Of a DNA stretch of 64,000 nt, positions 10,528-63,719 are shown piece by piece. A program made the position numbers and the translations under genes. The DNA comes from Macrostomum lignano (Eukaryota). The stretch covers positions 1 through 64,000 of the forward strand of contig NIVC01002359.1 of the NCBI GenBank assembly GCA_002269645.1, written 5' to 3'. The stretch's first letter is position 1. Each line of letters opens with the position of its first letter. Below the pieces are notes generated by a model that was given only the letters and a program-made list of their open reading frames with translations, was not told the origin of the DNA and made no database searches.

Positions 10528-10753
10528 TGACTATAAAAAGTTGGATATCTGTCAACTTAGGCAGCCTACAGTTGTTTAAATATGGGTTGAATGATAATCA
10601 CGAGAGGCCTCTGGGAAACCCTGGTGCTAAGAGACAGTTCAGAGACAGACAGAGAGAGCGGAGAACACGTGACTAGAAATCGTGGTCCATAGTGTCAACA
10701 AACAGACTAAACTTTTAAAAGGCAAAAAAACCCACCAATATCTGTAACGCCTG

Positions 10754-13700
10754 CTACTCATCAATAAATAGATCCTCTGTAGGATGACAGAACGCCATGT
10801 ACTCATTGTAGAACCTGGCGTAGGCAGCCTGCACAGCCGACACTAAGCTGGCCAGCTGTTGGCAGGCGCCAGTGAACACGTGAGCAGCGGCCAGACGGCG
10901 CTCCAGTCTAGGATGCCGGGTGACGAAAGCGGCAACCGCTGGCAGAGTTGGATGGACGCAGCACAGGGACACATTGCGCATGCTGAAGTAATAGCTGAAC
11001 TGTTCGGCAGTGGGCTGTAATACAAATTTAAATTTTTTTGGAAAAGTTTTTGTTTGTAAAAAATTTATTTAACTATCAACCCTTGCTACTTATCAGTAGG
11101 CGATTTGGAATATTATATTCAACATCTAACAGAGGAATTTTAAAAAGCCACAAGTTATGGATGATAAAATTGACGTCTTTGGAGGGTCGCCACACACACT
11201 CTCAATTACCCCAGCTAATGCTGGCACCCATTTTACAGCTGGGTGAATTGAAGCAATGCGTCTTAAGCGTCTTGCTCAAGGACACAAACAGTGGGATCGG
11301 GAATCGAACCCCCGACCTTCAAGTCGTAAGTCCAACGCTCTAACCACTAGGCTACAACCCCCTGCCTAAAACCCCCTTAGAAAACACTGAGCAAGTTGTC
11401 CATGCTTACTTTTGTTTAACAAACGAGTACTAAAAAGTTACAAAAATTAAAAAAACAATTTGAATGATAAAAGTACAGCCGCATTTTATCAGCCTACCTA
11501 CTGACTTAAAAAACGCAACCTTAGCTACGCATCTGTAATACCTGCTGCAAACAGCAGTGACTGTCACGTGACTGCCGCTTTAATGCCCGCTTATTGACAA
11601 GATCGGCGGCGCCCGTAGACGCTGCCAGACAGGGCGAGGACAGACGGCGCAGCAGCTGCGTCAGCAGCGGTGGCGCCGTTTTCTGGCGATGCTTTGCCGT
11701 AAAATTTGCATCGCCCTGTTGCGGCTGCTGTTGCTTGAGCGAAGAAAAAAGCAGACAACTTTAGATTTTAGCGCACATAATAACAGATGAAAAAATAGGT
11801 TAGCAAAAGCGCTACACTACTCACATAAGCATTGCAAGTAGGCGAGAAGCGTTTTGTAATACAATTTATGCATTTGGAACGACAAGAAGGGCATCTTACC
11901 TCGCCAGTTAAACAGCTGCTAGACATTCTAATGCCGTAGGTGCTCACTACCACACTGCAGTTGGAGCCACTGCGACCTGATTGGCTGCTGAGCACCTTGA
12001 AATGAGTAAATACGAGTATCAATAGTATGTGCATTAGCATAACTGCTTGATGAGGGACAAAAATCTGTTTTCTTTTTTGATTAAATAAATGAAATGACGC
12101 TCAGTTAAGTGAAATGGCGCCCAGTTAAATGAAAAAAGGCGCCTAGATAAATGAAATGGCGCCCAGTTAAATGAAATGGCACCTAGTTAAATGAAATGGA
12201 ACCCAGTTAAGAAAATGAGTCCCTAGATTTCCTCACAAATGGCTCACAATGCTCACCCGATCCAAAGCCTTGGCCAGACGGGCCCGATCGACTCCGGCGG
12301 CCACTTCAACCGCGCCAACAAAATTTAAACCTGTGGCAACAAAATTGCCGCCGCTGCCGCCAACGCCGCCTTCAGGTTCGGCAACGACAGCGGCGGAAGC
12401 GACAACAGTCGTTGGCGGACTCGACAATGTCGACAAGGTCAACGACGACGAGGACGACGACGAAGGCGGCGGCGGCGGCGATATGGCGGGAGCCGGCGGC
12501 AGTAGTGACTGACTGTCGCCAGTGCAGCTGGGCTTGGCGGCAGATGCCAACGGCAGAGGGAAGACGCCGCGCTCTCTAGTGCGCAGATTGACCCCGGCAG
12601 CCCAGCCGTCTGGGTCGACACGTAGCACAACAATAGGATCGCCTTCGACTAGAGCCAGCTGGTCCGGATGGCGCGGGCAGAACCGGTGGGCTGCCCGATG
12701 CGACGGGGTCGGCGTTGGCGACGGCTGAGCAGTCTGGGAGTCGCTGACAGACCAGATTGCCTCCCATTCGGCTGATTTGTAGAATGAGCGGCCGGCTGCT
12801 TTGGAGTTTATAAATTATTTATATTTAATTATACTGCCAATATTTTTACGGCATACTGTATGCTTTGCTCCATCCCTGCTAACCTAACCACTTTCTGAAA
12901 CACTTCTTAGCACAGTTGTCAACTCTTTTCGCGAGCGTCTACTCTTTTTCAGTAGTTCATCTGCGCATCATCCCTTAAATTTTAATTTGGCAGCTAAAAG
13001 TTTCTTTTTTCCTCGGGTTTTGTGGCCTCAAGAGCAAATGGGGTTAAGCAGGAACAAAATGACCCGTTAGAAAAGTTATACACCTGCAGAGGCATAAAAA
13101 GTGAACGAGGTGCACAAAAGAGGCAATTTGATGTCCTATTTCGTGCATGTTTTGGAAATGCACCTGAGTGCACCTTTTATGCCTAAATGTCACCAATATT
13201 TTTGAAGAGGCATGAAAAGTGTAAAATCGGTGAAGTGGTCAGGCAGTAGGTGAATTCTCAATTTTGATTGGTTGCGGCGTTAGGAGCAGTAAAAATGTGT
13301 AAGGGGCACTGGAGGTGCGCAAAAGGTGAACAGCAGGCTCACAAGTGAGGCACAGCAGGTGCACGGGAGGTGCAGAAGGAGTACAGAAAGTGCATGAAAG
13401 GTGAATCAGAGGTGGGTGTACATGATTCTAATTAAACTACTTCTTTCAAAAGACAATTAAGTCACGGAATAAATAGGTGCGTACATGTGCATTTCCAAAA
13501 CAAGCACGAAATTGGCCACTAAGGTGCCTCTTTTGTGCACCTTGCTCACCCTTTATGCCTACGCAGTTGCATAACTTTTCTAATGGGAATTAGTAATAAA
13601 AATTAACTGTAAGTTACATACTCGTAATTTGCAGGCACATTAAACATAGAAAAGCTTTATTTACACCTATACTAATCGCTGCTATCCCTTCCTGATTCTG

Positions 13701-15155
13701 GCCAACCGCGATAGTAAACATTCCCTATACTGATAAGTTCCAATGACTTTCAAATACTGAGGAAAAGTTCCGAAAAGTGATGAAAAGTTTTGCATCAGTG
13801 TGGAAAAGTTCCGAATCTTTCCAAAGAATAGTGAGGAAAAGTAGCAAAGAACTTTCGCAAGTTGGAATGCCCCTTGCATTGCTTCTGCACCTAAAGTGCC
13901 CACTGTGCACCTTTTGTTCACCTTTTGTGCCTCCAATGCACACTGTACACCTTTATGCACCTCCACCGCGGCGCACCTTTTGTTCACCTTTTACTCCACC
14001 AATACCCCCAATTCCTACTCTGTTCACCTTTTGTGCCTCCAATGCACACTGTGCACCTTTAATGCACCTAACTCCCCTATGACACTTGTGCCCCTACCGC
14101 CTATTTCATGCCTTAAATTCACCTTTTGACCCTGCAGAGGCACTGAGGTGAACACGCGGTGCACAAGTGGAACAAAATAGGCATAAGAGAGACGAAAGTG
14201 AGGCAGAAGGTGCAAAACTCTTCACCTTTTATGCCTACTTTAGAAAATCAAAATCCAACGGGTGAACGTAATACAGACGAAACTCAGCCTAGGGAGCAGG
14301 CAGGCCTAATATAGCTCAGCCAATGACAGAGCAGTAAGAAGAGAGGTCAAAGTTGGACGATCGAAACTCAGCCTAGGGAGCAGGCAGGCCTAATATAGCT
14401 CAGCCAATGACAGAGCAGTAAGAAGAGAGGTCAAAGTTGGACGGTCGAAACTCAGCCTAGGGAGCAGGCAGGCCTAATATAGCTCAGCCAATGACAGAGC
14501 AGTAAGAATAGAGGTCAAAGTTGGACGGTCGAAACTCAGCCTAGGTGGACAGACCCCATCTAGCTCAGCCAATGAGAGAGGAGTAAGGATTCGCTTTAGT
14601 ATTTTGTTTAAGTCAGACAGACACAAGCGGGCAAGAGGAAATCCTTAAACTGTTTTACGGGCCTGGCTGGAGGGCTGGAGCGCCAACCCTTTTCACTCTG
14701 CTCTTTATGCACACGCATTGGATTTGGGTGCAGCTGCAAACAGGATGAATACTCGTAAGCTAATTGAATGTGTTCGCTTTAAGGACAAAAAGCCTGTGGC
14801 GAATCTTGCAACTCAAACACTAAAATATCTATCTATTGTTATTTTAGTATCTGTGGTCACGACAGATCAACTTCAATTTTGACACCCTCTATTTTTTCCA
14901 AGCTGGAATTTAACAAACGGCGCCTGGAACCCCGCCGATAAAAAACAAAACTAAGTTTATTTTTTTCTAAATTTCAATATTACCTTCCGGAGACTTCTGT
15001 TCAGAGCCAGCCAGATCTTCGCCAACTCTACTACACACCGGCATGCTGACTGGCCTAGACGGTGTGCTGCTCATAAAACTGCGCAGCGATTGGCTGACGC
15101 TAGTATGACGCAACAGTACAGAATCCACCACTTTGGACGATACTTCGTGCTCCAT
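10754..15155 (-). CDS. MAPK8IP1: JIP1/JIP2 (MAPK8IP1/2)-like scaffold with SH3 and PTB domains, 5 exons, ~419 aa from first ATG (possibly ~51 aa longer)
   Basis: Exons (minus strand): 14984-15155 (frame open to 15335), 12257-12795, 11900-11995, 11542-11733, 10754-11014; phases are consistent. SH3 HRAAHRFCPRHPDQLALVEGDPIVV...WAAGVNLRTRERGVFP matches JIP1 [25 protein letters not shown]...NMRTGARGVFP. PTB C-term FVTRHP...HVF...FYNEYMAFCHPTEDLFIDE matches JIP1 FITKHP...HVF...YTCPTEDIYLE. Confidence 0.88.
11178..11363 (-). mobile_element. SINE family A copy (5' two-thirds)
   Basis: Reverse complement of the head and core of the 10256 element (GGGGGTTGTAGCCTAGTGGTTAGAGCG...GGTTCGATTCCC...GTGTCCTTGAGCAAGAC). 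Confidence 0.85.
13063..13587. mobile_element. MITE-like element with ~65-bp imperfect terminal inverted repeats
   Basis: CCCGTTAGAAAAGTTATACACCTGCAGAGGCATAAAAAGTGAACGAGGTGCACAAAAGAGGCA at the left end matches the reverse complement of 13520-13587. A related GTGCAC/AAAGGTG-rich segment follows at ~13880-14262. Confidence 0.65.
14275..14700 (+). repeat. Dispersed element with 84-bp CCAAT-containing tandem units (x3.5); related inverted copy at ~30100-30480
   Basis: GAAACTCAGCC recurs at 14279, 14363, 14447 and 14531. Reverse-complement similarity, including the flanking GCAAGAGGAA and GGCGCC segments, to 30100-30480. Confidence 0.75.
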
Positions 15156-15419
15156 TTCGTCTAAGCAGTGCCGACAAGGTCTGGCATCAGCTAAGCTTGT
15201 ACAATCGGCCGCCGGGCTCAACTCAGTCAGCTGATAGAATTGGCGCTGACATCCGGTACAGGTGCGGATAGTGCCGCTGTGGCCTGACGCCTGCTGCTGC
15301 TGCTGCTGCTGCGGGGGCCGTTGTTTAGTATTTTGTTAAATTCAACTTTGACTACTGCAAGTAGGCTTACTAGATGACGAGTTCGGAATGTTCCACCTCT
15401 CATACTCCTTCGGCGACAT

Positions 15420-15560
15420 TGACTGCTGAGCACATACAAGAGCGCGGACACGCTCACTCAGGGTGTACAGCGGTCCGGACTTTCTAATTGTCGGGCATGT
15501 ACACTCTCTGTGTCTTTGGGGTTGGCCCTTATAGGTGTGAATCGAACGCGCGTTTATAAT
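15420..15560 (-). mobile_element. SINE-like family B copy between NLE1 and the JIP-like gene
   Basis: Minus strand GTTCGATTC...GGCCAACCCC...GTGTACATGCC...GAAAGTC...CTGTACACCCTGAG...GTGCTCAG. Confidence 0.55.
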
Positions 15561-15806
15561 CTCCAACATATGGAAGCTGATGGGATGGCTGGCAGTGGAA
15601 GAAAAATTAATACAACTCAAAAAAGGCAATTTTTCATGCAAAAAAAGTTTGACAGTCACAATTTTATTACTTTCTTGACAAGGTCTCCGGGAAGTGAGGC
15701 AATTTGAATCCAACAAAGTGCGCTAAATATAAAATGCTCCTGTTGCCTACTAACAGTAGGATAAAAACACCAATTTAATTAAGCTAGACTATTCCACTTG
15801 TAATCT

Positions 15807-17211
15807 TCAGTTTCGCCACAGCTTCAATTCGCGATCCTTCCCTCCGCTGGCCACTTTCTGGCCGTCGGGCGACCAATCGACTGCGTAAACTTCGTCAGCG
15901 TGGCCGGGCAAATCGTTCACAGGTTTTAAACGATTCTTGCCGCCAGCAGCGCCAATGTCCCACAGTTTTAGGGTGCTGTCGGCGCTAGACGATACCAATA
16001 GGCGGCTGTCGGCCGACCAGGCCACCTGGTAGACTCGGCCAACATGGCCAAGCAGGGTGGCCAAGAATTTGCCTGTCCGGCCGTCCCACAATCGGACAGA
16101 TTTATCAAAACTGGCGCTAGCCAATAGGCGGCCGTCCGGGCTGAATCGGACATCGTTGACCAGCTGCAGGTGGCCGGTTAGGCGGGCCACGGGCCGCTTG
16201 TCGGTCTCCGGGGTCCACAGCGTTAGCGTGAAATCGTCGCTGCCTGATACGAGGCGTTCCGGCTGGTCGCGTCTGGGGTGGGCGGGAGAATGAAGGGTTA
16301 AGTACTTGGTTCTTAGCCAATGGGATGGGGAGCATTATATAATGAGATTGGGAGCATTATCCAATGAGATCGGGAGCATTATCCAATGAGATCGGGAGCA
16401 TTATCCAATGAGATCGGGAGCATTATTCAATGAGATCGGGAGCATTATCCAATAAGATCGGGAGTATTATCCAATGAGATCGGGAGCATTATCCAATGAG
16501 ATCCGGAGCATTATCCAACGAGATCGGGAGCATTATCCAATGAGATCGGGAGCATTATATAATCACACTAAGAACCCTAGCAAACTGCATGGAGACTAAA
16601 CATGATGCTAAGGAAGCCGTAGTCTTCTATTGTCTAATTGCCTAACCTGGCAGCCTCGTAGACTCGCCGGGCCCGTTCGCACAGCTCAGTTCTTGGCGCG
16701 CCAATCTCCGGTGCCGGCTTGCCAGGCTCGTTAGCACCAAGCCGCATAGCGTAGTCCGTACTGAGCGCCAGAGTGTTCACCCAGTGCGCGTGCTGCTGCA
16801 GGGTGCGGCACAGGGCGCCGTCGTCAGCGCGCCAAACTCGGACTGTCCGATCTCGGCTGCCCGTGTAGAGCAGGTCGGTGCCGCCCCAGCGCACCTGCGC
16901 AATGGGATGGAGGGTGAGGGTTTTCAAGTAAGTATATTGCCTGGACCACGATTTCGTTTATTCATTTTTGATAGTGTCTAAAACTTAGGCATTTGAACAT
17001 TTGCTTATCAATCTGCCTTGCTACTGTCCTGTCTTAGTGTCTGTCTGTCTGTCTGTCTACTTGTCTGTCTGTCTGTCTGTCTGTCTGCCTACCTTAGTGT
17101 CTGTCTGTCTGTCTACCTTAGTGTCTCTCTGTCTGTCTGTCTGTCTGTCTGTCTGCCTACCTTAGTGTCTCTCTGTCTGTCTGTCTGTGTCTGTCTGTCT
17201 GCTTACCTAAG

Positions 17212-17264
<53 letters not shown>

Positions 17265-17489
17265 GCCTACCTTAGTGTCTCTCTGTCTGTCTGTCTGCTT
17301 ACCTAAGTGTCTGTCTGTCTGTCTGCCTACCTTAGTGTCTGTCTGTCTGCCTACCTTAGTGTCTGTCTGTCTGCCTACCTTAGAGTCTCTCTGTCTGTCT
17401 GTCTGTCTGTCTGCCTACCTTAGTGTCTGTCTGTCTGCCTACCTTAGTGTCTGTCTGTCTGCCTACCTTAGAGTCTCTCTGTCTGTCTG

Positions 17490-17531
<42 letters not shown>

Positions 17532-18965
17532 CCTACCTTAGTGTCTGTCTGTCTACCTTAGTGTCGCTCTGTCTGTGTCTGTCTGCCTACCTTAGTGTCT
17601 GTCTGTCTTAATGTCTCTCTGTCTGTCTGTCTATCCACCTTTCCTATCTACTTAAAATTTTAAAAAATTAACACAGCCCCCAAGTTACTCACCTGAGTCA
17701 CGGCCTGCTCGTGTCCGCTAATAACCCGGCTAACCTGTCCAACAATGGTGTCCCACAGTATCACAGTGCAATCCTTAGACGCCGATGCCAATAATCTGCA
17801 CTCAGAATCCAGATGCAGCGGTCGCCAAGCCAAGCTGGTCACCCACTGCGTGTGCCGAGCCAGCGGCCGGCCAATCTGCTTGCCAGTGTCCGGGCACCAC
17901 AGGCAAATCTGGCCGCGCTTGCAGGCGCTGGCCAGGCGCCGGCCGTCCGGCGACCAGGCAATGCACAGCACCCAGTGCTTGTGTCCCCGACACTCGTGCA
18001 AAGGCGTCTCGGTTGACAAGTCCCAGAATCTGACGGCGGCGTCGCCGGATCCGCTGGCCAAATTCCGGCTGTCAGGCGAGAATGCCGCCGATAGGACGGC
18101 CTCCGAGTGGCCGGGCAAGCTGGAGGTGCAGCGAGTCACCGGGCGGACACGAAACAGCGCTTGCGGTTGGTAGACTATGCGGAGCAGGCGCTCGTTGACT
18201 TGGCCGCAGTCGACAGCGACAGCTAGACTGGTGGCCACTTCCGCTTCGTCTACGAAAAATCTGGGGTAGGGAATATGTAGGGCGCAGTTAGTCGCGGGTT
18301 CGAATCTACGCGCAGCCATATTTAATTTAGGTTATTAATCAGCTTTTATATCCGGCTGCATTTATTTTAGCGCCGCTGAGCACTTATTTTGGAGCCGCAG
18401 GCACTCAGTTTGGCACCAATGGCACTCATTTTGGCGCCGCAGGCACTCATTTTGGCACCATAGGCTCTCATTTTTGGCGCCATAGGCACTCAATTTGGCG
18501 CCACAAGTACTCATCTTAGCGCCGCAGGCACTCATTTTGGCGCCATAGGCACTAAATTTGGCGCGATAGACACTCAATGACGCAGACACTCCTTTTGCCG
18601 CCGCAGGGCCCTTTTTGGCACCCTGAAGCAAAAATTCTTGGTTTTCATTAAGCTGCGCATATTGTAGAGTTATTTTGATCACCGGGGGCGAATCATTTCC
18701 CAAAGAATTGACAAGCCCCCCCCCTTACTAACTTCCTAACGCATTACCTAGCAAAGCATACTACTCACTTATAAATAACTTGATCATCATAATCCCCACT
18801 CTGGACTATCAATTGAGCATCGAGTGTCGCCTTTAGATCTGCTACTGTAGATCCCAGCAGAGCCTGCAGGGGCGGCCCAGCTTCCTCGCCAGTCTCGCTG
18901 ACAAACTGCACAAGCACGGCGCGATCTTCTCCATTGTCGTCATTGTCATCAGCTGTGCTGGACAT
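15807..18965 (-). CDS. NLE1: Notchless homolog 1 (NLE1/Rsa4), WD40 ribosome-biogenesis factor, 4 exons, ~492 aa
   Basis: Exons (minus strand): 18769-18965, 17693-18260, 16647-16894, 15807-16272 (1479 nt, phase-consistent). Diagnostic motifs: [96 protein letters not shown]. Confidence 0.95.
16340..16560. repeat. 22-bp minisatellite, NLE1 intron
   Basis: ATCCAATGAGATCGGGAGCATT units. Confidence 0.92.
17020..17635. repeat. (GTCT)n compound microsatellite with CTACCTTAGT spacers, NLE1 intron
   Basis: Same family as 39320-39430 and 43790-44770. Confidence 0.95.
18365..18575. repeat. ~21-bp imperfect tandem repeat, NLE1 intron 1
   Basis: GGCACTCATTTTGGCGCCRYA units. Confidence 0.8.
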
Positions 18966-23318: not shown

Positions 23319-24583
23319 TGAGGGCTAAGCAATAAGTTTTTAGATATGCATAGTTGAGAGGCAGCTGACAAAATCTGACACCATAGGTATCAAGTGCATT
23401 AGGCCCTATATAAGTACAATGTTTGTAAAGTTTCAGACACACTGGTCATATATATTCAGTGTAGCACCCAAACCAAGCTAGTATACCTACCGTATCTATC
23501 AAATTCACAATGGAGCTCAATATGAGTCATTTTAGAGCAATGATTTATTACTATTTTAAAAGTGGTTTGCAGCAGCAAGAAAGTCTTAAGCACTTGCAAG
23601 GAGCTTTTGGGTATGAAGCACCATCTAGATCCACCATTTTTGACTAGTTTGTCAAATTTCAATGTGGTAGATAGAGTCTGGATAATAAAGAGCATAGCGG
23701 CTGGCCTGTCTCCTCAATGACCAAGGATAGGCCTAATATTGCTGCTATCTGGGCCATGGTTGAGGATAGGCCTAATGTCCAAGTGACTATGGTCTAGATA
23801 GAAGCAGAAGTGGGCATCTCATCAGAATCTATCAGGACAATCCTGCATTCACAGCTCAACCTAAGCAAGATTTCTGCATGCTAAGTGCCTTATCAGTAGA
23901 CTCTGAAGCAAAAAGAGGCTCAGGTGACCTAATGCCACACCATGCTCGACAGATTCAATGGAAGTAGCTCAAACTCAGTCTGGGATATTGTCAGTGGTGA
24001 CAAGTTCTAGATCTATAGTTTTGACCCAGTGACTAAGCAGCAGTTGGCCCAGTGGACTCCAGTTAGTGGCACCCTACCATCTAAGCTTCAGCAAGAGCGC
24101 AGCATGGCAAAGCAGATAATGGCCATTTTTGTGGTAAAAACTGGTTATCTGGCTATAGTTCCACTTGTGCAGCAATGCAAAGTCACCAGTAACTAGTACA
24201 CCAACGTTTGCTTACCAGAAGTGCTAAGTGCTCTTTCTAGGCATTGCCCAAGGACTCAAGCTTGGGGCATCCTTCTCTATCATAACAATGCCCCAGCCCA
24301 CAAGGCTCAACTGGTGGTAGAGTTTCTGGCCAGAGAGTGCATTCAAGAGCTCGGTCATCCACCCTACAGCCCTGACCTGGCCCTTTGCAACTTTTTTGTG
24401 TTTCCACAAATCAAGCGCAAGATGTCTGGGATCTGCTATAGATCACCAAAAGCTGCAGTGGAGGCTTTTATCTGGCATGTGGAGGAGGTGCCTGCTTACA
24501 ATTGGTCCAGCTGCTTCAGCAAATGGTTTGAATGCATGAAAATTTGCATCGAATCTGCTGAAGAGTACTTTGAAAAGATGTAA
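23319..24583 (+). mobile_element. Decayed Tc1/mariner (mariner-type) transposon; transposase pseudogene 23510-24583
   Basis: MELNMSHFRAMIYYYFKSG...FGYEAPSRSTIFD*F, a WVP motif mutated to *VP, IVSGDKF*IYSFDP (GDETW), LYHNNAPAH, HPPYSPDLALCNF and EEYFEKM. TA followed by TGAGGGCTAAGCAATAAG at 23317-23340 resembles a mariner left TIR; no clear right TIR. Confidence 0.9.
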
Positions 24584-39800: not shown

Positions 39801-42800
39801 GGCTGGCTAATTTGCACTCTCTGGCAATGGCGTAGTAAAGTAGAGATGGATAAATTAATTAGAATCACGTCGTCAACTGTACTTGAGCAATCTTGTTACA
39901 ATTTGCTATTACTGTAAATGAGCAAAGGACAGAGAGAGTGATCGGTTATATCAAGATTGTTGCGTAAATAACTTTTTTGCGCTACCGAACACTTACAAGT
40001 TAAGCCAAGTGGGCAGCGGTTAGTACGCAGTTAAATAGACAAGATAAAGCTCAGCAGTAAACGTCTCTGACCCTCGCACCAAAGTGCCCTGGGTTCGATC
40101 TGGGGCTTCTGCGCTTCTTGCCCATGAAGGTCAACCACGAGGTACAGTGTGTACATGTCTCATAATGAGAAAGTCAAAGCCGCCGCTGTACACCCTGTGT
40201 GTGCGTGCTCAGGGCTGACTTCTTGCCTCTGCGGTTTAACTGGGTTGCGGTTGTGAATAAAAGCCCCCTGTAAACTGAGCACACTGAGCTGCAGTTCACC
40301 CTGCTGTGGTAGGGTAGCGTAAAAGCCCCCTGTAAACTGAGTACACAGAGCTGCAGTTCACCCTGCTGTGGTAGGGTAGCGTAAAAGCCCCCTGTAAACT
40401 GAGTACACAGAGCTGCAGTTCACCCTGCTGTGGTAGGGTAGCGTAAAAGCCCCCTGTAAACTGAGTACACTGAGCTGCAGTTCACCCTGCTGTGGTAGGG
40501 TAGCGTAAAAGCCCCCTGTAAACTGAGCACACTGAGCTGCAGTTCACCCTGCTGTGGTAGGGTAGCGTAAAAGCCCCCTGTAAACTGAGCACACTGAGCT
40601 GCAGTTCACCCTGCTGTGGTAGGGTAGCGTAAAAGCCCCCTGTAAACTGAGTACACTGAGCTGCAGTTCACCCTGCTGTGGTAGGGTAGCGTAAAAGCCC
40701 CCTGTAAACTGAGTACACTGAGCTGCAGTTCACCCTGCTGTGGTAGGGTAGCGTAAAAGCCCCCTGTAAACTGAGTACACTGAGCTGCAGTTCACCCTAC
40801 TGTGGTAGGGTAGCGTAAAAGCCCCCTGTAAACTGAGTACACAGAGCTGCAGTTCACCCTGCTGTGGTAGGGTAGCGTAAAAGCCCCTTGTAAACTGAGT
40901 ACACAGAGCTGCAGTTCACCCTGCTGTGGTAGGGTAGCGTAAAAGCCCCCTGTAAACTGAGTACACAGCTGCAGTTCACCCTGCTGTGGTAGGGTAGCGT
41001 AAAAGCCCCCTGTAAACTGAGTACACAGAGCTGCAGTTCACCCTGCTGTGGTAGGGTAGCGTAAAAGCCCCCTGTAAACTGAGCACACTGAGCTGCAGTT
41101 CACCCTGCTGTGGTAGGGTAGCGTAAAAGCCCCCTGTAAACTGAGCACACTGAGCTGCAGTTCACCCTGCTGTGGTAGGGTAGCGTAAAAGCCCCCTGTA
41201 AACTGAGTACACTGAGCTGCAGTTCACCCTGCTGTGGTAGGGTAGCGTAAAAGCCCCCTGTAAACTGAGCATACTGAGATGCAGTTCACCCTGCTGTGGT
41301 AGGGTAGCGGCGAGTTGCAACGCCAGAATGTCTCAGGTTACTCCAATGCAACCCGTGTAGTTTTCCCCTTGGAATTTCTACTTTTGACAACCATAATAAT
41401 CTGGCATTATCTCTAAACCCAGGTACTTGAACCTGCGCCAGGATGATCGCGTCTTCCAGGTGGAGCCGCACACCAGCCTCGGCTGTGTCCTATACGAGCT
41501 GATGCTAGGCGGCGAGCAGCGTGCGGCGTCTGAGCAGCTTGTTGCCTGTGAAATTCTGCCAGCAGTCGCGGAGGCGTCCGGGGATGAAACTGACACAGCA
41601 GAGGCGGCAGCGGCGGTCGCAGCGGCCTGCTGTCTAGACGGCGCTGCCGATTTCTCTGCCGATTCTTCCGACGGTGCCGCCGGCTCAGCTCCTCCCGCTG
41701 TTGCCCGCGCCCCCACCCGCTTTCCCGTTTCTCGAAGGCGTCGTGGCGGCGGCGGCGGCGGCGGCGGCGGCTTCGGTCGAAACGGGGGCCGGGGCGATCG
41801 GCGAGTCTCTGATGGCAGAGGCGGCGGCGGCGGCAGAAGCGAAGGCGGCGGTGGCGGCGCAGAAGGGGACGCCGTGCTGCAGGAGCTGCAAAAGCGGGCG
41901 CTGCGCTCGGGCCAGCTGCTAGCGGTGCAGGTGGTGAGCTGCTCCACCCGGGTGGACGTTCGCTGGCAGGACGGCCGACTGCAGACCGACATCTCGTCTT
42001 GGTGAGCGCCGATTTGCCTTTATTTCATTTGTTGATGCGTTTCTTTGTTCAAGCTGGCTTCTGCTACTTTTTTATTTTGTTGAGTGCCGACTTGAAAACT
42101 TCACAAGCAGCTTTTAAATGCCTTTTTCCAATTAGTGTTGATGTATTATTCTTCTTTGGCTTTGAAGTTCGCAAAGTTTCAATTTAGCAGATATTAGCCA
42201 CCTTCCTAATTAGGCATGTTTCTCTTCATTTCGAAACCAAGATAATGTGTTGCTTCAGACCTACACTCCACGTGTTAGTATATGATGTGAATTCACACAA
42301 TCACTCCGTAGCATGCTAATCTCAAATACAGTGTGACTTCACACATTCACTTCACTCCACAGAAAGCTTATTTCAAATACAGTGTGACTTCACACCTTCA
42401 CTCCACAGCACACTAATCTCAAATACAGTGTGATTTCACACCTTCACTCCACAGCACACTAATCTCAAATACAGTGTGATTTCACACCTTCACTCCACAG
42501 CACACTAATCTCAAATACAGTGTGACTTCACACCTTCACTTCGCAGCACACTAATCTCAAATACAGTGTACACACCTTCACTTCGCAGCTAGCTAATCTC
42601 TGTGTGACTTCACACCACTCGACAGCATGCTAATCTCAAATAGTGTGACTTCATACCTTGGCTTTAAATCACTCATCGTCTTACGGTGTGACGTCATGAA
42701 TCTGTATGTGCTTTGCTAACTTTTTACGGCATTTTTCCCCAATTAAAACCAAAAAAACCGACAAACAGCGATCTGGTGCCGTTCGACGATTTCATGGAGA

Positions 42801-43808
42801 GCCAATTCTTTCCTGGCGATTTTGTGCTCAGCAGCCAGCAGCAGCTGCAGCTGGAGGCCGACATCGGCGACGGCTCCAATCCGGCAAGCTCGTCGATGCC
42901 CGATCGCTACGGGCTGGTGCTGGAGAATGACGTCAGGCAGAAGCTGGCCAGAGTGCAATGGTTTCGCGAGGGCCCGGCCGCCTCTACCGCTACCGGCGGC
43001 GCCTCCGAACCGCTTGGCCAGCCCGAGCTAGTGAGCACCATCGACCTAAAGGAGTACCCTATCTATGAGTACAGGCCCAGGACTATCGTGATGCTCAAGT
43101 CGCAGCAGTTAGTGGGCGATCAGCCCGAAGCGGCAGCGGCATCTCCGCCCGGCCCTATCCAGTTAGGCGACGTTGTGCGAGTGGTGCTGGAAACGGTGAG
43201 ACTGCTGTGGGTCAGGGTTCAAATGTTGCTTCGGCGACATCGTTATACAAAACTAGCGCTGAGCCAATCCTGCCCATTCCGCTGACTTCTGAGCACATGC
43301 GAGCGCGTCGGTACTGTACGCAGGCACGTACTCAGGGTGTACAGTGCCCTGACTTTCTAATCATCAGGCATGTACACTGTCTGTGCCTGGGGGAAGGGGG
43401 TTGGCCGGCATGGGTTCGAGTCGCCCGACAACCCCCCGCCCTTCTCCAGCCAATTTTCATGCACAGGCTCCAAATTAAAGTTTAATTTGTTTAATAAATT
43501 ATTAGAGCGCTAAACTCTAACTAATGAGCCAGGTAGTTGTGTCGCGATAGCTAGGTGTTGACCGCTGAGCTGCTCTGCACGAAATAGATAGATGGGTAGA
43601 TGGACAGTTAGACAATGGGTATGTAGATTGATTGATTGATAATCAGGTGGGCAGAAGGACAGACAGGCAGACACTAAGAATAGGCGACAGGTGGCGTCGT
43701 CCGAGCCGGTGGCGAAGGCGTTGCCGCTGGGGAAGAACTGGGATGTTGGGCAGTGCGGGGCGGGTGGGTTGGCGCTGCGAGACAGGGCACTGGACAGACA
43801 GAAAGACT

Positions 43809-43860
<52 letters not shown>

Positions 43861-43911
43861 CTAAGACAGACAGACAGACACTAAGACAGACAGACAGACA
43901 GACAGACACTA

Positions 43912-43945
<34 letters not shown>

Positions 43946-43946
43946 T

Positions 43947-44001
<55 letters not shown>

Positions 44002-47000
44002 GGCAGGCAGACACTGACAGATTGATAGACAGACAGACAGACACTAAGACACAGACAGACAGACAGACAGACACTAAGACACAGACAGACAGACACTAAG
44101 ACACTAAGACGCAGACAGACACACAGACAGACAGACACTAAGACACAGACAGACAGACACTAAGACACTAAGACGCAGACAGACACACAGACAGACAGAC
44201 ACTAAGACCCAGACACACAAACAGACAGACAGGGAGACACAGACAGACAGTAAGACCCAGACAGACACACAGACAGACACTAAGACCCAGACACACAAAC
44301 AGACAGGGAGACACAGACAGACACTAAGACCCAGAGAGACACACAGACAGACAGGGAGACACAGACAGACACTAAGACCCAGACAGACACACAGACAGAC
44401 AGGGAGACACAGACAGACACTAAGACACAGACAGACAGACAGACACTAAGACCCAGACAGACACACAGTCAGACAGGGAGACACAGACAGACACTAAGAC
44501 ACAGACAGACAGACAGACACTAAGACCCAGACAGACACACAGACAGACAGGGAGACACAGACAGACACTAAGACACAGACAGACAGACAGACACTAAGAC
44601 CCAGACAGACACACAGACAGACAGGGAGACACAGACAGACACTAAGACACAGACAGACAGACACTAAGACCCAGACAGACACACAGACAGACAGGGAGAC
44701 ACAGACAGACACACAGACAGACAGACAGACACACAGACAGACAGACAGACACACAGACAGACAGACAGACATTGACACAGATACTTCAGAAATAGATTGA
44801 TCCACTTGGAATACGTAGTGTAAAAACTGGTAATAAAAGTTTCATTCAGTTTCATTCTATTTCATCGCTAAATCAGCTGTTAGTGTCAATGCAAACTGAT
44901 CTTCAAAGAGACCGGGAATTCAACTTGTTTCTTAAGCTAATAACCGCCCCCACTACCCCAGTGTAATTCTTCTTTTTTTGTTTGCCGAAAATCCGACATA
45001 TATTTGAGGATGGGAACTCTGCTGCCTACATATGTGCTTCAACCCCCCCCCCCCAGTGATTCGCACTTCCTGCCTCCGTCTATTACAGTTGTTTGCTCAA
45101 CAGCATACGCAATAGCTTATTATAACTACAAAGCTGTTGCAGTGTGCGGGCTAGGCTGTCAGTGGAACAGTTTCTGTGTCTTCATTTTCTGGTTTTATAG
45201 CATTCCATATATGTTCTATAAAAGAGCGCGTTAATAAAATTACTTTTCGATACATATCGGTATAATCATTACCTAACTATAAGTCTATTTAGGCCTATTC
45301 TAGCTTGTATGCAGTCTTATTATGTATCCTAGCGAATCACTTCTTAATAAAGTGTGCTTTCGATACATATCAACAGGGCAAAATTCGTGTCGCCTGGTTA
45401 GACGGCCAAGAGTCGGATCTGTGGCCCAGCGAGTTATTTAGTTTAGAAGGCCTTCTCAGTGGCGGCCCGGAGCAACGCTCGGCTAGCGAGTCTTCGAGCT
45501 TTTTCAACAATTTCGAAGCTGACTCGGACGATAACGAATCCTGGGAGACGGAGAGCGAAGAGACCGCTGAGCCTGACGAGGCTGACCGAGTAGGCATTGT
45601 TGTTCAAGTCACCAGCGGCGGGGATGTAGTTGCTATGGCTACAGAGGGAGACGACGAGATGGGCGGAGTGGCTACTGCCGCCAATTCGAATTGCTGGCTG
45701 CCGCACCACGCCTCCTGCTCGGATGAGTGGGCCTGCGCTAGACAGGTGGGTTTTTATAGTCTGTCGCAGTCTGTAATTGCTGTCACTGTGATTTTTGCAG
45801 TCTGTAGTTGCTGTCACTGTGATTTTTGCAGTCTGTAGTTGCTGTCACGGTGATTTTTGCAGCCTGTAGTTGCTGTCACTGTGATTTTTGCAGTCTGCAG
45901 TTGCTGTCACTGTGATTTTTGCAGCCTGTAGTTGCTGTCACGGTGATTTTTTGCAGTCTGTAGTTGCTGTCACGGTGATTTTTTGCAGTCTGTAGTTGCT
46001 GTCACTGTGATTTTTTGCAGTCTGTAGTTGCTGTCATGGTGATTTTTGCAGCCTGTAGTTGCTGTCACGGTGATTTTTGCAGCCTGTAGTTGCTGTCATG
46101 GTGATTTTTTGCAGTCTGTAGTTGCTGTCACGGTGATTTTTGCAGCCTGTAGTTGCTGTCACGGTGATTTTTTGCAGTCTGTAGTTGCTGTCACGGTGAT
46201 TTTTTGCAGTCTGTAGTTGCTGTCACTGTGATTTTTTGCAGTCTGTAGTTGCTGTCATGGTGATTTTTGCAGCCTGTAGTTGCTGTCACGGTGATTTTTG
46301 CAGCCTGTAGTTGCTGTCATGGTGATTCTTTGCAGTCTGTAGTTGCTGTCACGGTGATTTTTGCAGCCTGTAGTTGCTGTCACTGTGATTTTTGCAGCCT
46401 GTAGTTGCTGTCACTGTGATTTTTGCAGCCTGCAGTTGCTGTCACTGTGATTTTTGCAGCCTGTAGTTGCTGACACGGTGATATTTTGCAGCCTGTAGTT
46501 GCTGTCACTGTGATTTTTTGCAGTCTGTAGTTGCTGTCATGGTGATTTTTGCAGTCTGTAGTTGCTGTCACGGTGATTTTTGCAGTCTGTAGTTGCTGTC
46601 ACGGTGATTTTTGCAGCCTGTAGTTGCTGTCATGGTGATTTTTGCAGCCTGTAGTTGCTGTCACGGTGATTTTTGCAGTCTGTAGTTGCTGTCATGGTGA
46701 TTTTTGCAGCCTGTAGTTGCTGTCACGGTGATTTTTGCAGTCTGTAGTTGCTGTCACGGTGATTTTTGCAGTCTGTAGTTGCTGTCACGGTGATTTTGCA
46801 GCCTGTAGTTGCTGTCACTGTGACTGTCGCAGCCTGTAGTTGCTGTCATACCGGCTGTCACGCAGGCTGTCACAGCATCCATCGCACTCTGTGCCTTCTA
46901 TATGCTGCTGTCCTATGCTGCCGCCATTTTAGGTTGGTGTCCAGCTCAGGGAGCCGCTGCGACTCATTGCCGACTGCCTACGCGAGGCTGTAAACGCAAA

Positions 47001-50000
47001 TGCCTGTCGTACGGTAACATCAACAGTAGTGCACAGCATCCACCAGGCGCTGGACACCATCCTGCTAACAGCCCACGGCCTGCGCACCCAGCTGCACGAC
47101 CTGCGCTCTCGGCCGTCCTGCCTGTGCCGCAATGCCACAGCTAGTCAGCGCCAGGCTCTGCTGCAGTTCTCCAGCCACCTGCGGCACCTCACCGCCGACA
47201 CCGGCTGCCTGGAGGCCTTCACCGATCCGGAGGCCATGCCGGACAAGCTGGCGCCGTTGCGTCACGCGCTCACTCTGCGCCGTCCCGACGAGCAGCTGCT
47301 AGTGGATCAGCAGCAACGCGTTGTGCCAACATTTGTGCCGAGGGTGTCCAATCCGCTGTCCGACTCGCTTAGGCGCCTGTGGCAGTCGGCCACCAGCCTG
47401 ATGCGGGCCGGGCCCGACTTGCCGCCTGCTGAGCTGGACACTGACGCCCAGTTGGACGTGCCAGATGTGCGTTTGATTTGCCAGTCTGTCTGGACCTTCT
47501 GCTGTTTGTTTGTTGCTTATTGCATTTCCATTCGAGTTCAAAGCTGTAGTTTGGGACCGATCTTTGTTCGTATTCATCTGAAGGATTCTTTGGAGATTAA
47601 GAATTTTAGTTTTGAGGTTTGGATTCTTAGTTTTGAGGTTGGGATTCTTAGTTTTGAGGTTGGGATTCTGAGGTTGGGATTCTTAGTTTTAAGGCTGGGA
47701 TTCTTAGTTTTTGAAGTTGGGATTCTTAGTTTTGAGGCAGGGATTCTTAGTTTTAAGGTTGGGATTCTTAGTTTTGAGGTTGGGATTCTTAGTTTTTGAG
47801 GTTGGGATTCTTAGTTTTGAGGTTGGGATTCATAGTTTTGAGGTTTGGATTCTTAGTTTTGAGGTTAGGATTTTAAGTTTTAAGGTTGCGATTCTTAGTT
47901 TAGAGGTTGGGATTCTTAGTTTTGAGGTTGGGATTCTTAGTTTAGAGGTTAGGATTCTTAGTTTTAAGGTTGGGATTCTTAGTTTTGAGGTTGGGATTCT
48001 TAGTTTTTGAGGTTGGGATTCTTAGTTTTGAGGTTGGGATTCATAGTTTTGAGGTTTGGATTCTTAGTTTTGAGGTTAGGATTTTAAGTTTTAAGGTTGC
48101 GATTCATAGTTTTGAGGTAGGGATTCTTAGTTTTGAAGCTGGGATTCTTAGTTTAGAGGTTGGGATTCTTAGTTTTGAGGTTGCGATTCTTAGTTTAGAG
48201 GTTGGGATTCTTAGTTTTGAGGTTGGGATTCTTAGTTTTAAGGTTGGGATTCTTAGTTTTGAGGTTGGGATTCTTAGTTTTTGAGGTTGGGATTCTTAGT
48301 TTTGAGGTTGGGATTCATAGTTTTGAGGTTGGGATTCTTAGTTTTGAGGTTAGGATTTTAAGTTTTAAGGTTGCGATTCTTAGTTTAGAGGTTGGGATTC
48401 TTAGTTTTGAGGTTGCGATTCTTAGTTTTGAGGTTGCGATTCTTAGTTTTAAGGTTGGGATTCTTAGTTTTGAGGTTGCGATTCTTAGTTTTAAGGTTGG
48501 GATTCTTAGTTTTGAGGCTGGGATTCTTAGTTTTGAGGTTGGGATTCTTAGTTTTAAGGTTGGGATTCTTAGTTTTGAGGCTGGGATTCTTAGTTTGAGG
48601 TTGGGATTCTTAGTTTTGAGGTTAGGATTTTAAGTTTTAAGGTTGCGATTCTTAGTTTTGAGGTTGGGATTCTTAGTTTTGAGGCTGGGATTCTTAGTTT
48701 TGAGGCTGAGATTCTTAGTATTTGAGGTTGGGATTCTTAGTTCTTGAGGTTGGGATTCTTAGTTTTGAAGCTGGGATTCTTAGTTTTTGAGGTTGGGATT
48801 CTTAGTTGGAAGATTGGGATCACTAGTTTTATAAGCATTTTAAGGGGTGGATTTTTATGATTTGTTTGTTTAAACCTTACTAATTTTGATTAAATTTTTG
48901 TTGTTTTGTTTCTATATTGATATTGATGTCGCTGTGGTGGGGTCCGCACGTTCAATGTAGAATTGAGCATTGAATTTCAACCCGATGTCTGGACTTTAGT
49001 AAGATAAAAGATGCATATAAAGACATAATTTCTGATCCAGGCTCAATGATAAAACCGCTCCTGAAGGGTATAGCAAGCTTGTCAGAGAGCGCATCGGTTG
49101 CAAAGAAACAACAATTCACAGGACTAACCAGTAATGGTTTAGAATCGATTCATCTGTAATTAAATACACTCCAGCCGAGATGAGTAACAAAGAATGCTTG
49201 AAACGGATTAATGTCGGAATCGGCTGCCTTGAATGCGAATCAGTATTGGATTGATGGGCGCATTTGTTAGTTAGCTAACTAATTCCATAGCTAAATTGCC
49301 TGCAGATAAAATGGCTATGAATAAACTAATGAACTGTTTTGATTCTTTCCAAGCATTGCATACTATTGTCTTCAAACAGCTGTGCCCCTCTGAAGCTTCT
49401 AGGTATTCCCCTCTGGCGCTTCTAGTATTCCCCTCGGGAGCTTCTAGTATTCCCCTCGGGAGCTTCTAGTATTCCCCTCTGGAGCTTCTAGTATTCCCCT
49501 CTGGAGCTTCTAGTATTCCCCTCTGGAGCTTCTAGTATTCCCCTCTGGAGCTTCTAGTATTCCCCTCTGAACCCTCCAGCATTCTCCTCTGAACCCTCCA
49601 ATATTCCCCTCTGAACTCTCTAGTAATTCCCTCTAAACCCGCTAGAGCAACTCTGGAGAATGGTCTATTTATTCTTGCTTAGCAATCTACTTTTTGAACA
49701 ATAAAAATCATAATAAATAGCTCTTTTTATGGCTAACGCACACTTATCTTGCTCGTTGATATACACCTGTACATAACAGACCATGTTCTGTCGTTGTGCA
49801 TACTAGTACGCTCATATATGCATATCGTACTGGGTTGGCCGGCTGTCTTGTTGCATTAGCGAATCGCAGGTCAACGCACTGGACTCCTGTCCTATGTGTA
49901 TAAATATACTCCAATAGATTGCGGCTTTTTCAAGCCTCGTATTCAATGCATCCTATCTCTGGTGATCCATATCGAGTCTACTTTAGGTCACTTTCATTCT

Positions 50001-53000: not shown

Positions 53001-56000
53001 GTGTTAAGAGGAAAATGGCATATGCGTAGCAAAGCAAAGGCAACTAGTACGCTCGTATTTCCTTTTAAGCGCTCTCCTCGGCTCTATTAAAAATGCAGTA
53101 AAAAGCATTAAAAGAAAGTAAAAAGAGACGTAAGACTAAATTGTTTTTATTGCTTGTTCTTCAGATATTTATTGTCAAAACACTCCTAATTGTAGGTGGA
53201 AAATTAATTCGGTTCATTACATCATAGACGTTCGACATAAATTATTATACCTTTTCCGGACATCTTCTGAACTGAAAAAAATTGTCTGCTATTAAAAATA
53301 ATCATGCTCACACGAGCTACCAGGGTATAACCTGTGTCACATCCACCTTTTAGCTATATTAAAATCTCCGCAAGATTTTGGTGTCTAAAACCCTACAGTG
53401 CATTTGTATCCTTGAGCTAGAATATTAATGCAAGCAACGCCCCGGATTTTTGCTGATATTTCAAGTGCTACCGATTTCAACTGGCTTCAGCTGGGACTTT
53501 CTGCAGGCATTTAGACTGCTGGCTTGAAGCAAGCGATATTCTTAATCCTGAAAGCAGCATCACACTTCTTTGGCTAAGTCTCTTAGCACTCACGAAGATT
53601 TTCCTTCTAAGTAGAAAGCAATCCGTGTTTTTTGTGACTGATTTCATCTGGATTTCCTACTCTTTAGTGGCTCTTCCTAGCTTGACTGCTTGAAGTTCGT
53701 GTTTCCTGTGTCTCTCCTGCCCTTTCGTTTCCAACTCGATCGCTTCCTTTGCTAGTTTGACTCGCTTTCGGGCCTGCTCCTCTGATCGATCCTCTTCATC
53801 AGCTACTGCAAGCTTCTGTCAGGTTCATGCTTGGCATCTGACTTGCTTCGCCCTCTAATTTTATTATGCAGATTCTGAATCAATCGAAATATCAATGCTA
53901 AGTTACTCTCTCTCTAAAGGGTGGCACAGGTTGTGCAGTCTTTACTTTGATTGCTCAGAAGTGGTCGCTGGCTTATTGTATTAGTATATTTATTTCCGCT
54001 TCTCAACAGCATGCGCAACAAAAAGATCTAAGCGCGCTGATGCTGCATCAGTTTGCACTGGCACAATTTCTACGGAGCGAGAGCGAGAGGGAGAAGAAAA
54101 TAGGAAAATTAAAGGCGCGACACCGAATTCAATGGGATGCGAGTCGGGGTTTTAACGTCAATTCAAATCTTTCTTCAACTGCTTTCTGTTGGTATACGTC
54201 TGCATTATATTATTGTCTGACTCATTGTAACCGCAAATTGTGTTTGTTAGCTTAGAGTATTATTCCTTCATACAACACGAACAAAGTTTCCGCGATTAAT
54301 CTATTATTCAGTCTTGAAGTTCGTCAAACATCTTCTTGCCACGGAGCGGTGTGAACGAGAACCTCTTGCCGCGAAGCGGAGTGAACCTCTTGCCGCGAAG
54401 CGGAGTGAACTTCTTGCCGCGAAGCAGAGTGAATCTCTTGCCGCGAAGCGGAGTGAACCTCTTGCCGCGAAGTGGAGTGAACCTCTTGCCGCGAAGCGGA
54501 GTGAACTTCTTGCCGCGAAGCGGAGTGAACTTCTTGCCACGAAGCGGAGTGAACTTCTTGCCGCGAAGAGGAGTGAACCTCTTGCCGCGAAGTGGGGTAA
54601 ACTTCTTCCCACGAAGCGGAGTGAACCTCTTGCCGCGAAGCGGAGTGAACCTCTTTCCACGAAGCGGAGTGAACCTCTTGCCACGAAGCGGAGTGAACCT
54701 CTTGTCGTTCGAGCTCTCATCGTCCAGTTCTTGCTCTTCACCGTCGTCCTCCTGATCGTAGTAGGGCTCTCGGTCGTACGCGGTCGGGCTATTAACTTCG
54801 CTCAGTGCTTGCATCAGGTTGCGAACCTCGAATTCCGATGGTTCGTTCTCGCCCGTCAGCGCTTCCGGCTGATGCTGCTCTTGCTTTTGCTCCGTCGACG
54901 TAGCGTAGGCGGTTGAGAACATCGCCAAAGATACCAAGATGGCCACATATTGGGCGTACTTACACCTCGGCTTCATTTTCGCTCTTCACGCTATAGTTTA
55001 AAGCTGAACTGAAAAAGCCGATCAGTTGACTCCTTGACTCTGCCAGTTGTGCTTTATAGAGTCCAGTTAGGAGAGCTAGGTTGCCGCTCCAGTGTCTTTC
55101 TTCGCGTTGAATTTCTGCCTCTTTTTATCCCCTCTTTCCTGCAACGGAGCAGGGGTGGTTGCAGTTTTGCTCCGCATTTCATCAGCATTGCGCGCTGAGT
55201 CCAATTGGCTTCCACGGGTTGGATCCTATCAGAGTAAAGCTTCGGTGTTTGTTATGTCAGGATGCGATTTCCCCCACTGGCCGCACGCATACTCTCAATA
55301 ATCTCGACTCTCAACTTTAAGCTTTTGTTTAAAAGCTATAATTTCTTTTTGGAAAATAATACAACTGAACCAACTTGACGAGCCATTTGCAAATTAAATG
55401 CAATTTCAGCCGCTTGTGTCTCGGTTTGAAATTCGAATGTCATGAACTGTAGCTATGGAAACATAATTAGGTTTGCTCTTCTGGTATGGTTTTTTTATTA
55501 TCTAGCTTGTAGATCTCTATCATAATAAATAACGACGATAAAAATATTATATTGAAGGACTTTCATTACACATTAGAAATACTCAAAAAGAAATAACTAT
55601 TTAAAATATGTGGAAGATAATCGGTAATATGACCTGAAGCTTGTTATTGATTTGAGAACTCACTATGCCCTTATTGGCTTTAGTAATAGGCATTGACGTT
55701 GCTGATCCAAGTCTGCCGCATGATTATCCGCAGTGTCAGTTTCGTTGCTTGCCGCTCATCTCTAGTTGCTTTTGTCCATCCATCGTAAGGAGAAAATCGA
55801 AGCTTGAACTAGTTCTATCTTTTTTCTCCTACTTGCGGGGAAAAGACAAAGCCAATTTTCTCTTTTGGGCGGCTCCTCGGCAATCGATCGACTTTTGAGG
55901 GGAAATGCCGGCCAGTCTTTTCCGATCCCAATCTGGCCTTGCAGTATGTTGTTTATCATAAATTCAACAAAGCAGAAAAGCACACAGCGTGTTTTTAACT

Positions 56001-63157: not shown

Positions 63158-63676
63158 TCACATGGCTCCGGGCGGAGCTCCTGTGTACTGGCTCAACGCC
63201 GATGCACTGGACGGCGGCGGCTGCCTCAGGCCGGCGGCGGCGGCGGCAGCCGGATAGGCGAAGGCGGCGGCGGCCGCGTGCTGCTTGGCGGCGGCCCGCA
63301 GTCGCAGGCTGTTGGCCAGCGGCGAGGAGTCGCCAGCAGCCCCGGCGGCGGACGACGGACCCGCCGCAGCAGCAGCAGCCGACGGTGGCTGCGAGTACAG
63401 CGGCGAATACGGCGACGGCCCGGCGTAGGGGCAGGCGGGCGCGGCAGCAGCGGCGGCGGGTCCGGCCGGGTGGCCAGCCGGCGTCCACGGGAAGCTCTTG
63501 GCCGTCGCCCAGCCGGTGGCTCCGTAGCCAGCCGCGGCGGCAGCGCCGTATGAGGAATAGAAGGAGTCCTCGAATGGCTGCATGAAGCTGCCGAACTGGC
63601 CGGTAAAGGTGCCCTTCAGCGCCTCCAGGTGGCGCTCGCGCTTGCGCCATTTGGCGCGGCGGTTTTTGAACCAGAC
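63158..63676 (-). CDS. PITX: Pitx homeobox gene, last coding exon (5' exons lie beyond the window)
   Basis: Acceptor ...TCTGCTCAG then VWFKNRRAKWRKRER (K50 homeodomain helix 3, conserved intron position), GQFGSFMQPFED, TAKSFP and an OAR-like LANSLRLRAAAKQH, all Pitx hallmarks. Confidence 0.93.
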   Translation of the reverse strand, partial: VWFKNRRAKWRKRERHLEALKGTFTGQFGSFMQPFEDSFYSSYGAAAAAGYGATGWATAKSFPWTPAGHPAGPAAAAAAPACPYAGPSPYSPLYSQPPSAAAAAAGPSSAAGAAGDSSPLANSLRLRAAAKQHAAAAAFAYPAAAAAAGLRQPPPSSASALSQYTGAPPGAM

Positions 63677-63719
63677 CTGAGCAGATGGGGCGGTTGCAGA
63701 ATCGGTCACTTCATTGCTT

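Follow-up and report, generated by a model that had tools for sequence, protein, structure and literature searches.

A short piece of a G-protein beta (G-beta) gene lies within a (GACA)n microsatellite in an intron of a UBE2O-like gene of Macrostomum lignano. The piece is real and adds one more case to an event type already known; its effect is probably neutral. We regard it as probably being a non-functional repair patch gained in the L lineage, to which two of the three homeologous copies of the host gene appear to belong. The window analyzed, that is the whole stretch of 64,000 nucleotides, is the start of contig NIVC01002359.1 of assembly Mlig_3_7 (GCA_002269645.1), and the host gene encodes the 1316-aa hypothetical protein BOX15_Mlig022576g4 [Macrostomum lignano]. 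The window was compared with two further copies taken from the 90% cluster of the host protein, g2 on NIVC01002157.1 (L002) and g6 on NIVC01002600.1 (L003). Coordinates of the fragment and its immediate surroundings are given in Table 1; throughout, a slash marks a junction or an exon boundary.

Table 1. The G-beta fragment and the sequence around it in the M. lignano window
Feature	Coordinates	Strand	Description	Basis
G-beta codons	43678..43737	(-)	20 in-frame codons, equivalent to human GNB1 residues 234-253	tblastn
C-rich tract	43738..43779	(-)	42 nt, 74% GC, 57% C, ends CAG; foreign to the array	Recurrent-8-mer island test
Host intron	43196..45376	(+)	GT...AG, 2181 nt; fragment antisense to host gene	
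(GACA)n array	43793..44771		~980 nt, higher-order TTAGTGTCT and GTCTCCCTGTCT variants	TRF
Array remnant	43650..43679		~28 nt, AGAAGGACAGACAGGCAGACACTAAGA, on the other side of the insert	Three-way alignment with the L003 empty site
Ambiguous junction segment	43780..43796		17 nt, AGACAGGGCACTGGACA	

A G-beta fragment inside a (GACA)n array

Read on the minus strand from 43737 to 43678, the coding part of the fragment is TTC TTC CCC AGC GGC AAC GCC TTC GCC ACC GGC TCG GAC GAC GCC ACC TGT CGC CTA TTC. When the window was searched by tblastn, human GNB1 was identical to the encoded peptide at 19/20 residues (residues 234-253, E = 6e-8), and an invertebrate G-beta consensus assembled from database matches was identical at 20/20 (E = 1.3e-8). 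Both alignments extended four residues beyond the 20-mer, giving 83-88% over 24 aa (GNB1 residues 234-257), and the match stayed better than chance when scaled to the 764-Mb genome. The exact 20-mer is also contained in nematode G-beta proteins. Directly 5' of the codons on the same strand is a C-rich stretch of 53 nt with a terminal CAG. The recurrent-8-mer test, which asks for sequence foreign to the surrounding repeat, delimited a strictly foreign island of 100 nt (43680-43779), the sole such island in the arrays of the window, L002, and L003 and in the window's 17-kb array.

The fragment has no donor site, since its last TTC continues directly into the array motif TTAGTGTCT. No other G-beta exon was found by tblastn in the window or at the L002 and L003 loci, and the only other WD40 gene in the window, a Notchless-like gene at 15.8-18.2 kb, is ~30% identical. 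A functional G-beta comprises an N-terminal helix and seven WD40 blades over ~340 aa; here only residues 234-253 are present, with no donor site to join them to further exons. GC3 of the fragment was 0.90 vs 0.70-0.75 in native genes of the window, a value suited to a native M. lignano gene that is GC3-rich. The host gene's acceptors in this window are preceded by comparable C/A-rich tracts (e.g., …CCCCACCCCACCCCCGCTCTATGCAG/). Owing to these two properties the fragment looks like M. lignano sequence and not like contamination.

The preliminary description of this DNA had reported a G-beta fragment within a (GACA)n tract, flanked by microsatellite sequence, preceded on the minus strand by a C-rich acceptor, and lacking both a donor site and any companion G-beta exon in the window. 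Each of these points stands: the 19/20 match to GNB1 is bordered by array sequence on both sides (the 43793-44771 array and the 43650-43679 remnant), the tract ends in CAG, the terminal TTC passes into TTAGTGTCT, and other G-beta exons are likewise absent from the two paralogous loci.

The G-beta similarity begins at an ancient intron position

Similarity to G-beta begins exactly at the residue equivalent to F234, an ancient intron position. In the annelid Owenia fusiformis an exon starts at the F234 equivalent, cag/TTTTTCCCC (…tttcag/TTTTTCCCCAGT), in Nematostella an exon ends at residue 233, and a nematode genomic read-through ORF (…DINAVA-[intron translation]-FFPSGNAF) has its intron at the same position. 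Human GNB1 shares this phase-0 intron. The trematode Clonorchis has no intron here; a universal flatworm intron at the F234 position was therefore rejected, and the intron is not to be assumed in flatworms. A chance break falling exactly at this boundary, just after an AG, is unlikely, which led us to accept 'intron end plus exon start' of a G-beta gene as the best reading of the fragment, with the tract at 43738..43779 as the putative 3' end of the donor gene's intron. The earlier proposal that the boundary coincides with the GNB intron position is thus supported by Owenia, Nematostella, and the nematode read-through ORF, with Clonorchis as a lineage lacking the intron.

The preliminary description had further concluded that the fragment was copied from DNA and not from mRNA. 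This holds in part. The presence of intron-like sequence excludes spliced mRNA as the template; it does not exclude unspliced pre-mRNA, which is a documented template for insertions of this kind (PMC5110952). Processed retrocopies and class 1 TSIPs, which are LINE-mediated, resemble the fragment in being ectopic copies of part of a transcribed gene. They are marked by splicing, poly(A), and a target-site duplication of at least 5 bp, none of which the fragment displays; unlike them it keeps intron-like sequence, has no poly(A) and no target-site duplication, and contains only 60 nt of coding sequence.

Filled and empty sites in three gene copies

The assembly consists mostly of three-copy blocks representing subgenomes S, L1, and L2 (PMC10733133), with SNP rates of 1.91% between L1 and L2 and 2.41% between L and S (PMC10733133). 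In unique flanks around the insertion site, divergence between the window and L002 was 1.89% in intron and 0.86% in exon, between the window and L003 2.68% and 1.92%, and between L002 and L003 2.46% and 1.63%. Near the site, 29 derived states were shared by the window and L002, compared with 10 and 15 for the other pairings. These values fit an assignment of the window and L002 as the two L copies and of L003 as the S copy.

L002 carries the 113 nt at 17286-17398, in the same intron and with the same junctions; the match is 113/113, an identity that polishing could inflate, as Mlig_3_7 was polished with multi-mapping short reads (PMC5730564). The 20 codons of the fragment are identical at L002:17286-17345. 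The two contigs are nevertheless distinct: one SNP lies 40 nt to one side of the insert (GATTGACTG vs GATTGATTG), a second lies ~45 nt away on the opposite side, and array length differs by ~800 nt. In L003 the corresponding site is empty and reads ...CACTAAGA/CAGACAGACAG... (...GGCAGACACTAAGA/CAGACAGACAG...), so that the alignment sets filled …GGCAGACACTAAGA/ATAGGCGACAGGTGG… against L003 …GGCAGACACTAAGA/CAGACAGACAGACAG…. The (GACA)n array is found in all three copies, at lengths of ~0.5, ~1.0, and ~1.8 kb, and because L003 has the array without the insert, the array exists independently of it.

A chimeric assembly join at the repeat had been put forward as the main alternative to a biological origin, and there is reason to take it seriously: the genome is highly repetitive, ~36% of assembly length lies in subgenome-chimeric scaffolds (PMC10733133), and the PacBio/Canu assembly was polished by Pilon with Illumina and RNA-seq reads (PMC5730564), such that a chimeric read or a local Pilon reassembly might have placed G-beta sequence in a poorly resolved microsatellite. 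The identical insert and junctions in a second, diverged contig are, however, a strong argument against a one-off chimeric join, since both the difference in array length and SNPs less than 50 nt away on either side distinguish the window from L002. A third contig is cleanly without the insert, and the insert has non-exonic sequence, so spliced RNA-seq reads cannot be its source. An assembly or polishing artefact is hence highly improbable.

The intact acceptor, the 20 undisrupted codons, and the 0/113 differences between two copies could be taken as signs of a functional element, with the fragment serving as an exon in a nested antisense gene or having been exonised so as to affect the host transcript. 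Zero differences are within neutral expectation (P = 0.12 at the flank rate); nothing therefore points to constraint, and purifying selection on the fragment was rejected. The fragment also lacks a donor site, further G-beta exons are not within reach of it, one homeolog is without it, and exonisation into annotated host proteins was rejected, as the fragment is part of no annotated product of the three gene copies. We attach next to no probability to a functional role.

Along the locus, the grouping of the copies changes. At 41310-42040 the window groups with L003 (six shared states vs one), and at 42700-47580 it groups with L002. Grouping with L003 only ~2 kb upstream of the insert means that the locus or the scaffold is a mosaic. 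The switch falls around a 46-bp tandem repeat (42286-42659) and could reflect homeolog recombination, conversion, or a subgenome-chimeric scaffold, of which the assembly has many (~36% of its length; PMC10733133). L002 additionally contains ~5.9 kb (9782-15685) that is absent from the window (~42030-42041) and from L003 within the same gene.

Junctions of the insert and the direction of the event

On the plus strand the insert ends are ...GCGCTGCG and ATAGGCG.... At the clean junction, CTAAGA/ATAGGCG, the GA may derive from either partner, the array or …CCTATTC in reverse complement, which constitutes a 2-nt microhomology. The second junction (43780-43812) is blurred, with …GCGCTGCG followed by AGACAGGGCACTGGACAGACAGAAAGACTGACAG…, and the CCCTGTCT found there is an array variant too. 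The ambiguous 17 nt could be donor intron, an array variant (the array has GTCTCCCTGTCT units), or a second short patch. It shows 15/17 complementarity, with a unique core of ~8 nt, to a site of the same intron that lies 425 nt away (43338-43354). The segment may thus be a second piece, inverted and templated locally as in polymerase-theta repair, or the similarity could be due to chance. Comparison of the insert with the empty site revealed no target-site duplication, no poly(A), no A-run at the ends, and no terminal inverted repeats belonging to the insert.

The same series of filled and empty sites could arise with opposite polarity, if the insertion were older than the three-copy split and had been precisely removed from the S-like L003, which would have occurred by replication slippage or by unequal exchange between flanking GACA units. 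Array sequence does bracket the insert on both sides, and array lengths are very different between copies (~0.5-1.8 kb). On the tree ((window, L002), L003) one event suffices either way, and among the three copies compared a loss is as parsimonious as a gain. Such a deletion, however, must have taken exactly the foreign island, leaving a seamless CTAAGA/CAGACAG array, and no trace of the island persists in L003. We therefore consider removal from L003 unlikely.

Alternatively, the fragment may be the last remnant of a larger DNA-level G-beta duplicate, the rest having been erased by microsatellite growth and deletions. The arrays at this locus are dynamic and the second junction is blurred by array-like sequence, in keeping with such erosion. 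Against this, the exon-side junction is sharp, the sequence passing exactly into the array motif of the empty site, and there is no other G-beta-like sequence in the 2.2-kb intron, the window, or L002. An eroded duplicate thus appears very unlikely, and insertion of a short piece remains the preferred reading.

Mobile elements and the array

A further candidate source is capture by a mobile element that moves gene pieces about the genome, whether a Helitron, a (GTCY)n-bearing Helentron/HINE-like element, or a Pack-type element; the preliminary description had suggested a Helitron/Helentron-like (GTCY)n element. HINE/DINE-1-type elements do bear microsatellites, including (GTCY)n (PMC4067079), and captures by Helitron, HINE, or Pack-MULE elements resemble the present case in that a gene piece with intron sequence lies beside a GTCY-type microsatellite. 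The window also holds a second (GTCT)n array at 17031-17640 (+), in an intron of the Notchless-like WD40 gene, with a recurring GCCTACCTTAGTGTCT variant that contains the TTAGTGTCT motif. A 17-nt inverted repeat of a G-run and a C-run (43387-43403 / 45040-45056, 88% complementary) brackets the first array together with the insert. It is the sole candidate for element termini around the array and, being of low complexity, is probably due to chance.

Canonical Helitrons insert between A and T and are bounded by a 5' TC and a 3' CTRR, with a palindrome of 16-20 nt lying ~11 bp short of the 3' end (PMC4067079). Neither TC...CTRR ends nor a terminal hairpin were seen in the insert, and its target was A/C on the plus strand (C/T on the minus strand). 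Hallmarks of HINE/DINE-1-like elements are a TT target, a palindrome at the 3' end, subterminal inverted repeats of ~13 bp, and conserved flanks around the microsatellite in many copies (PMC4067079). No subterminal inverted repeats were tied to the insert, the G-run/C-run repeat being one that brackets the array, and neither an A/T or TT target nor a target-site duplication was found. The flanks of the window's two GTCT arrays showed similarity no greater than shuffled controls, the 17031-17640 array contained no foreign island, and a transposon shared by the two arrays was rejected. Unlike element captures, the fragment has no element termini, target preference, hairpin, or, to judge from the window's two arrays, multi-copy flanks, and a homeologous array occurs without the piece. 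The two filled copies occupy homeologous positions and are not transposed copies. The suggestion of Helitron or Helentron capture is consequently not supported, and capture by any of these elements has a very slim chance of being correct.

Other features of the host locus and the window

Between 43330 and 43450 is a short interspersed repeat, with 85% identity between 43330-43388 and 15456-15515 and 96% identity between 43349-43373 and 4504-4528. Adjacent to it are an imperfect hairpin of 19 nt (43391-43441) and a GGGTTCGAGTCGCC stretch resembling a tRNA T arm. The repeat, at which neither ARAGORN nor Rfam made a call, may be what remains of a SINE or MITE. Minisatellites in or beside the host gene lie at 41000-41309, 42286-42659, 45766-46500, and 47580-48630, with units of 62, 46, and 31/221 nt plus ~21 nt after 47.6 kb, and their copy numbers are very different among homeologs.

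Nested antisense in an intron of the UBE2O-like gene, 54308-54976 (-) encodes a secreted precursor of 222 aa. It has a signal peptide and ~15 tandem FTPLRG copies flanked by KR, and resembles a neuropeptide precursor for FTPLR-amide-type peptides. At the matching position inside the host gene, L002 and L003 have called genes of 229 and 230 aa, located on the opposite strand. Two further ORFs in the window were recognized by eye. That at 24221-24583 (+) is like the C-terminal part of a mariner-type transposase (…PPYSPDLALCNFFVFPQIKRKM…), and that at 63158-63709 (-), in which an alanine-rich tail comes after a homeodomain end (VWFKNRRAKWRKRE), is probably the last exon of a paired-class homeobox gene.

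A probable repair patch

A long tetranucleotide array is a plausible fragile site. The course of events that we favor would start with a (GACA)n array already present in the UBE2O-like intron of the ancestor of all three subgenome copies. A break or collapsed fork near one array end, in the lineage leading to the window and L002, would have been sealed with ~100-115 nt copied from the animal's own G-beta gene, comprising the last ~42-53 nt of an intron and 60 nt of the next exon, with genomic DNA or unspliced pre-mRNA as the template. Joining would have relied on very short microhomology, GA/TC on one side and possibly a CTGTCT-like sequence at the other, leaving behind no target-site duplication, poly(A), or element termini. 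The patch would since have been inherited passively and is probably neutral. If so, it would date from between the L/S and L1/L2 splits; alternatively, S would have lost it. The content of the insert, its filled and empty sites, its junction sequences, and its occurrence in two diverged contigs are observed. We infer that there was a break, which locus acted as donor, how the copying took place, and which way the event ran (insertion vs loss).

Among known systems, the closest likeness is to class 2 templated sequence insertions, in which patches from a distant locus seal a double-strand break, with microhomology and with neither target-site duplication nor poly(A) (PMC5110952). These insertions include intronic templates, and the experimental cases are RNA-derived (PMC5110952). 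Like the class 2 TSI/TSIP of Onozawa et al. (PMC5110952), the fragment would be a short piece templated elsewhere, including from an intron, and is heritable, with both filled states (window and L002) and an empty one (L003). The 2 nt (GA) at the clean junction may be microhomology of the kind seen in them, and alignment of filled and empty sites showed neither a target-site duplication nor a poly(A) tail, nor any cryptic poly(A) signal. It differs from them in lying inside a long tetranucleotide array, in a flatworm, and in being fixed in two of three homeologous copies, whereas class 2 TSIPs are polymorphic among individuals.

More loosely, the insert would fit polymerase-theta end joining or MMBIR-type switching. 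Polymerase-theta filler DNA and MMBIR/FoSTeS products (PMC7165422, PMC2895639) would share with it microhomology-primed copying with return to the broken end, a possible multi-piece junction (43780-43796), and an association with repeats as fragile sites. The size and source of the insert set it apart from the usual products of this pathway. Templated insertions of the polymerase-theta type are usually shorter and come from nearby sequence, typical TMEJ inserts being a few to tens of nt taken from within tens of bp; the fragment is ~100 nt and would stem from a different gene, and a patch of that size from another locus is rarer. The earlier idea of a template-switch-type insertion at the microsatellite survives in this form, as a microhomology-type templated insertion at the array that fits the filled and empty sites.

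The putative donor gene

The 20/20 residue match and the conserved intron boundary point to M. lignano's own G-beta gene as the origin of the fragment. Should the insert be a repair patch, the intron of the donor would be predicted to end ...CCCAACATCCCAG before FFPSG, matching 43738-43779 or further. A protein search with the in-frame ORF spanning intron, exon, and flank returned only three nematode-type fragments and no M. lignano donor, and M. lignano was absent among the at least 120 matches listed for full-length GNB1. A chimeric query of UBE2O and the G-beta consensus found the host protein and no G-beta, in a search where candidate selection favored long proteins. When 1.84 billion representatives were searched exhaustively by HMMER with the 94-aa ORF, only generic multi-WD40 proteins came up, the members of ten G-beta clusters included no M. 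lignano entry, and exact-pattern scans of metagenome contigs for the fragment gave no match. Two proteins contained the exact 20-mer. One, the Logan protein P0328, was rejected as donor with 44/60 identical positions at the DNA level, and the other, P0327, is a named nematode protein.

Discussion

Taken alone, the significance of the fragment is small: one more break sealed with borrowed DNA, probably without function. As a case it is clean and datable, given that the filled/filled/empty series in the homeologs of a neopolyploid would place the event between the L/S and L1/L2 splits. It also demonstrates that short gene scraps inside microsatellites of Mlig_3_7 can be real and need not be misjoins.

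A broader proposal is that breaks recur at the (GACA)n arrays with the TTAGTGTCT motif, or that these arrays belong to an unrecognized mobile unit, and that they systematically acquire pieces of transcribed genes. We think this quite unlikely. If it were true, orphan intron/exon scraps beside such arrays would be common genome-wide and would mark a pathway of repair or capture that is particular to this neopolyploid flatworm, and should many scraps be found at GACA arrays across the genome, repeat-specific fragility and repair bias would be worth study.
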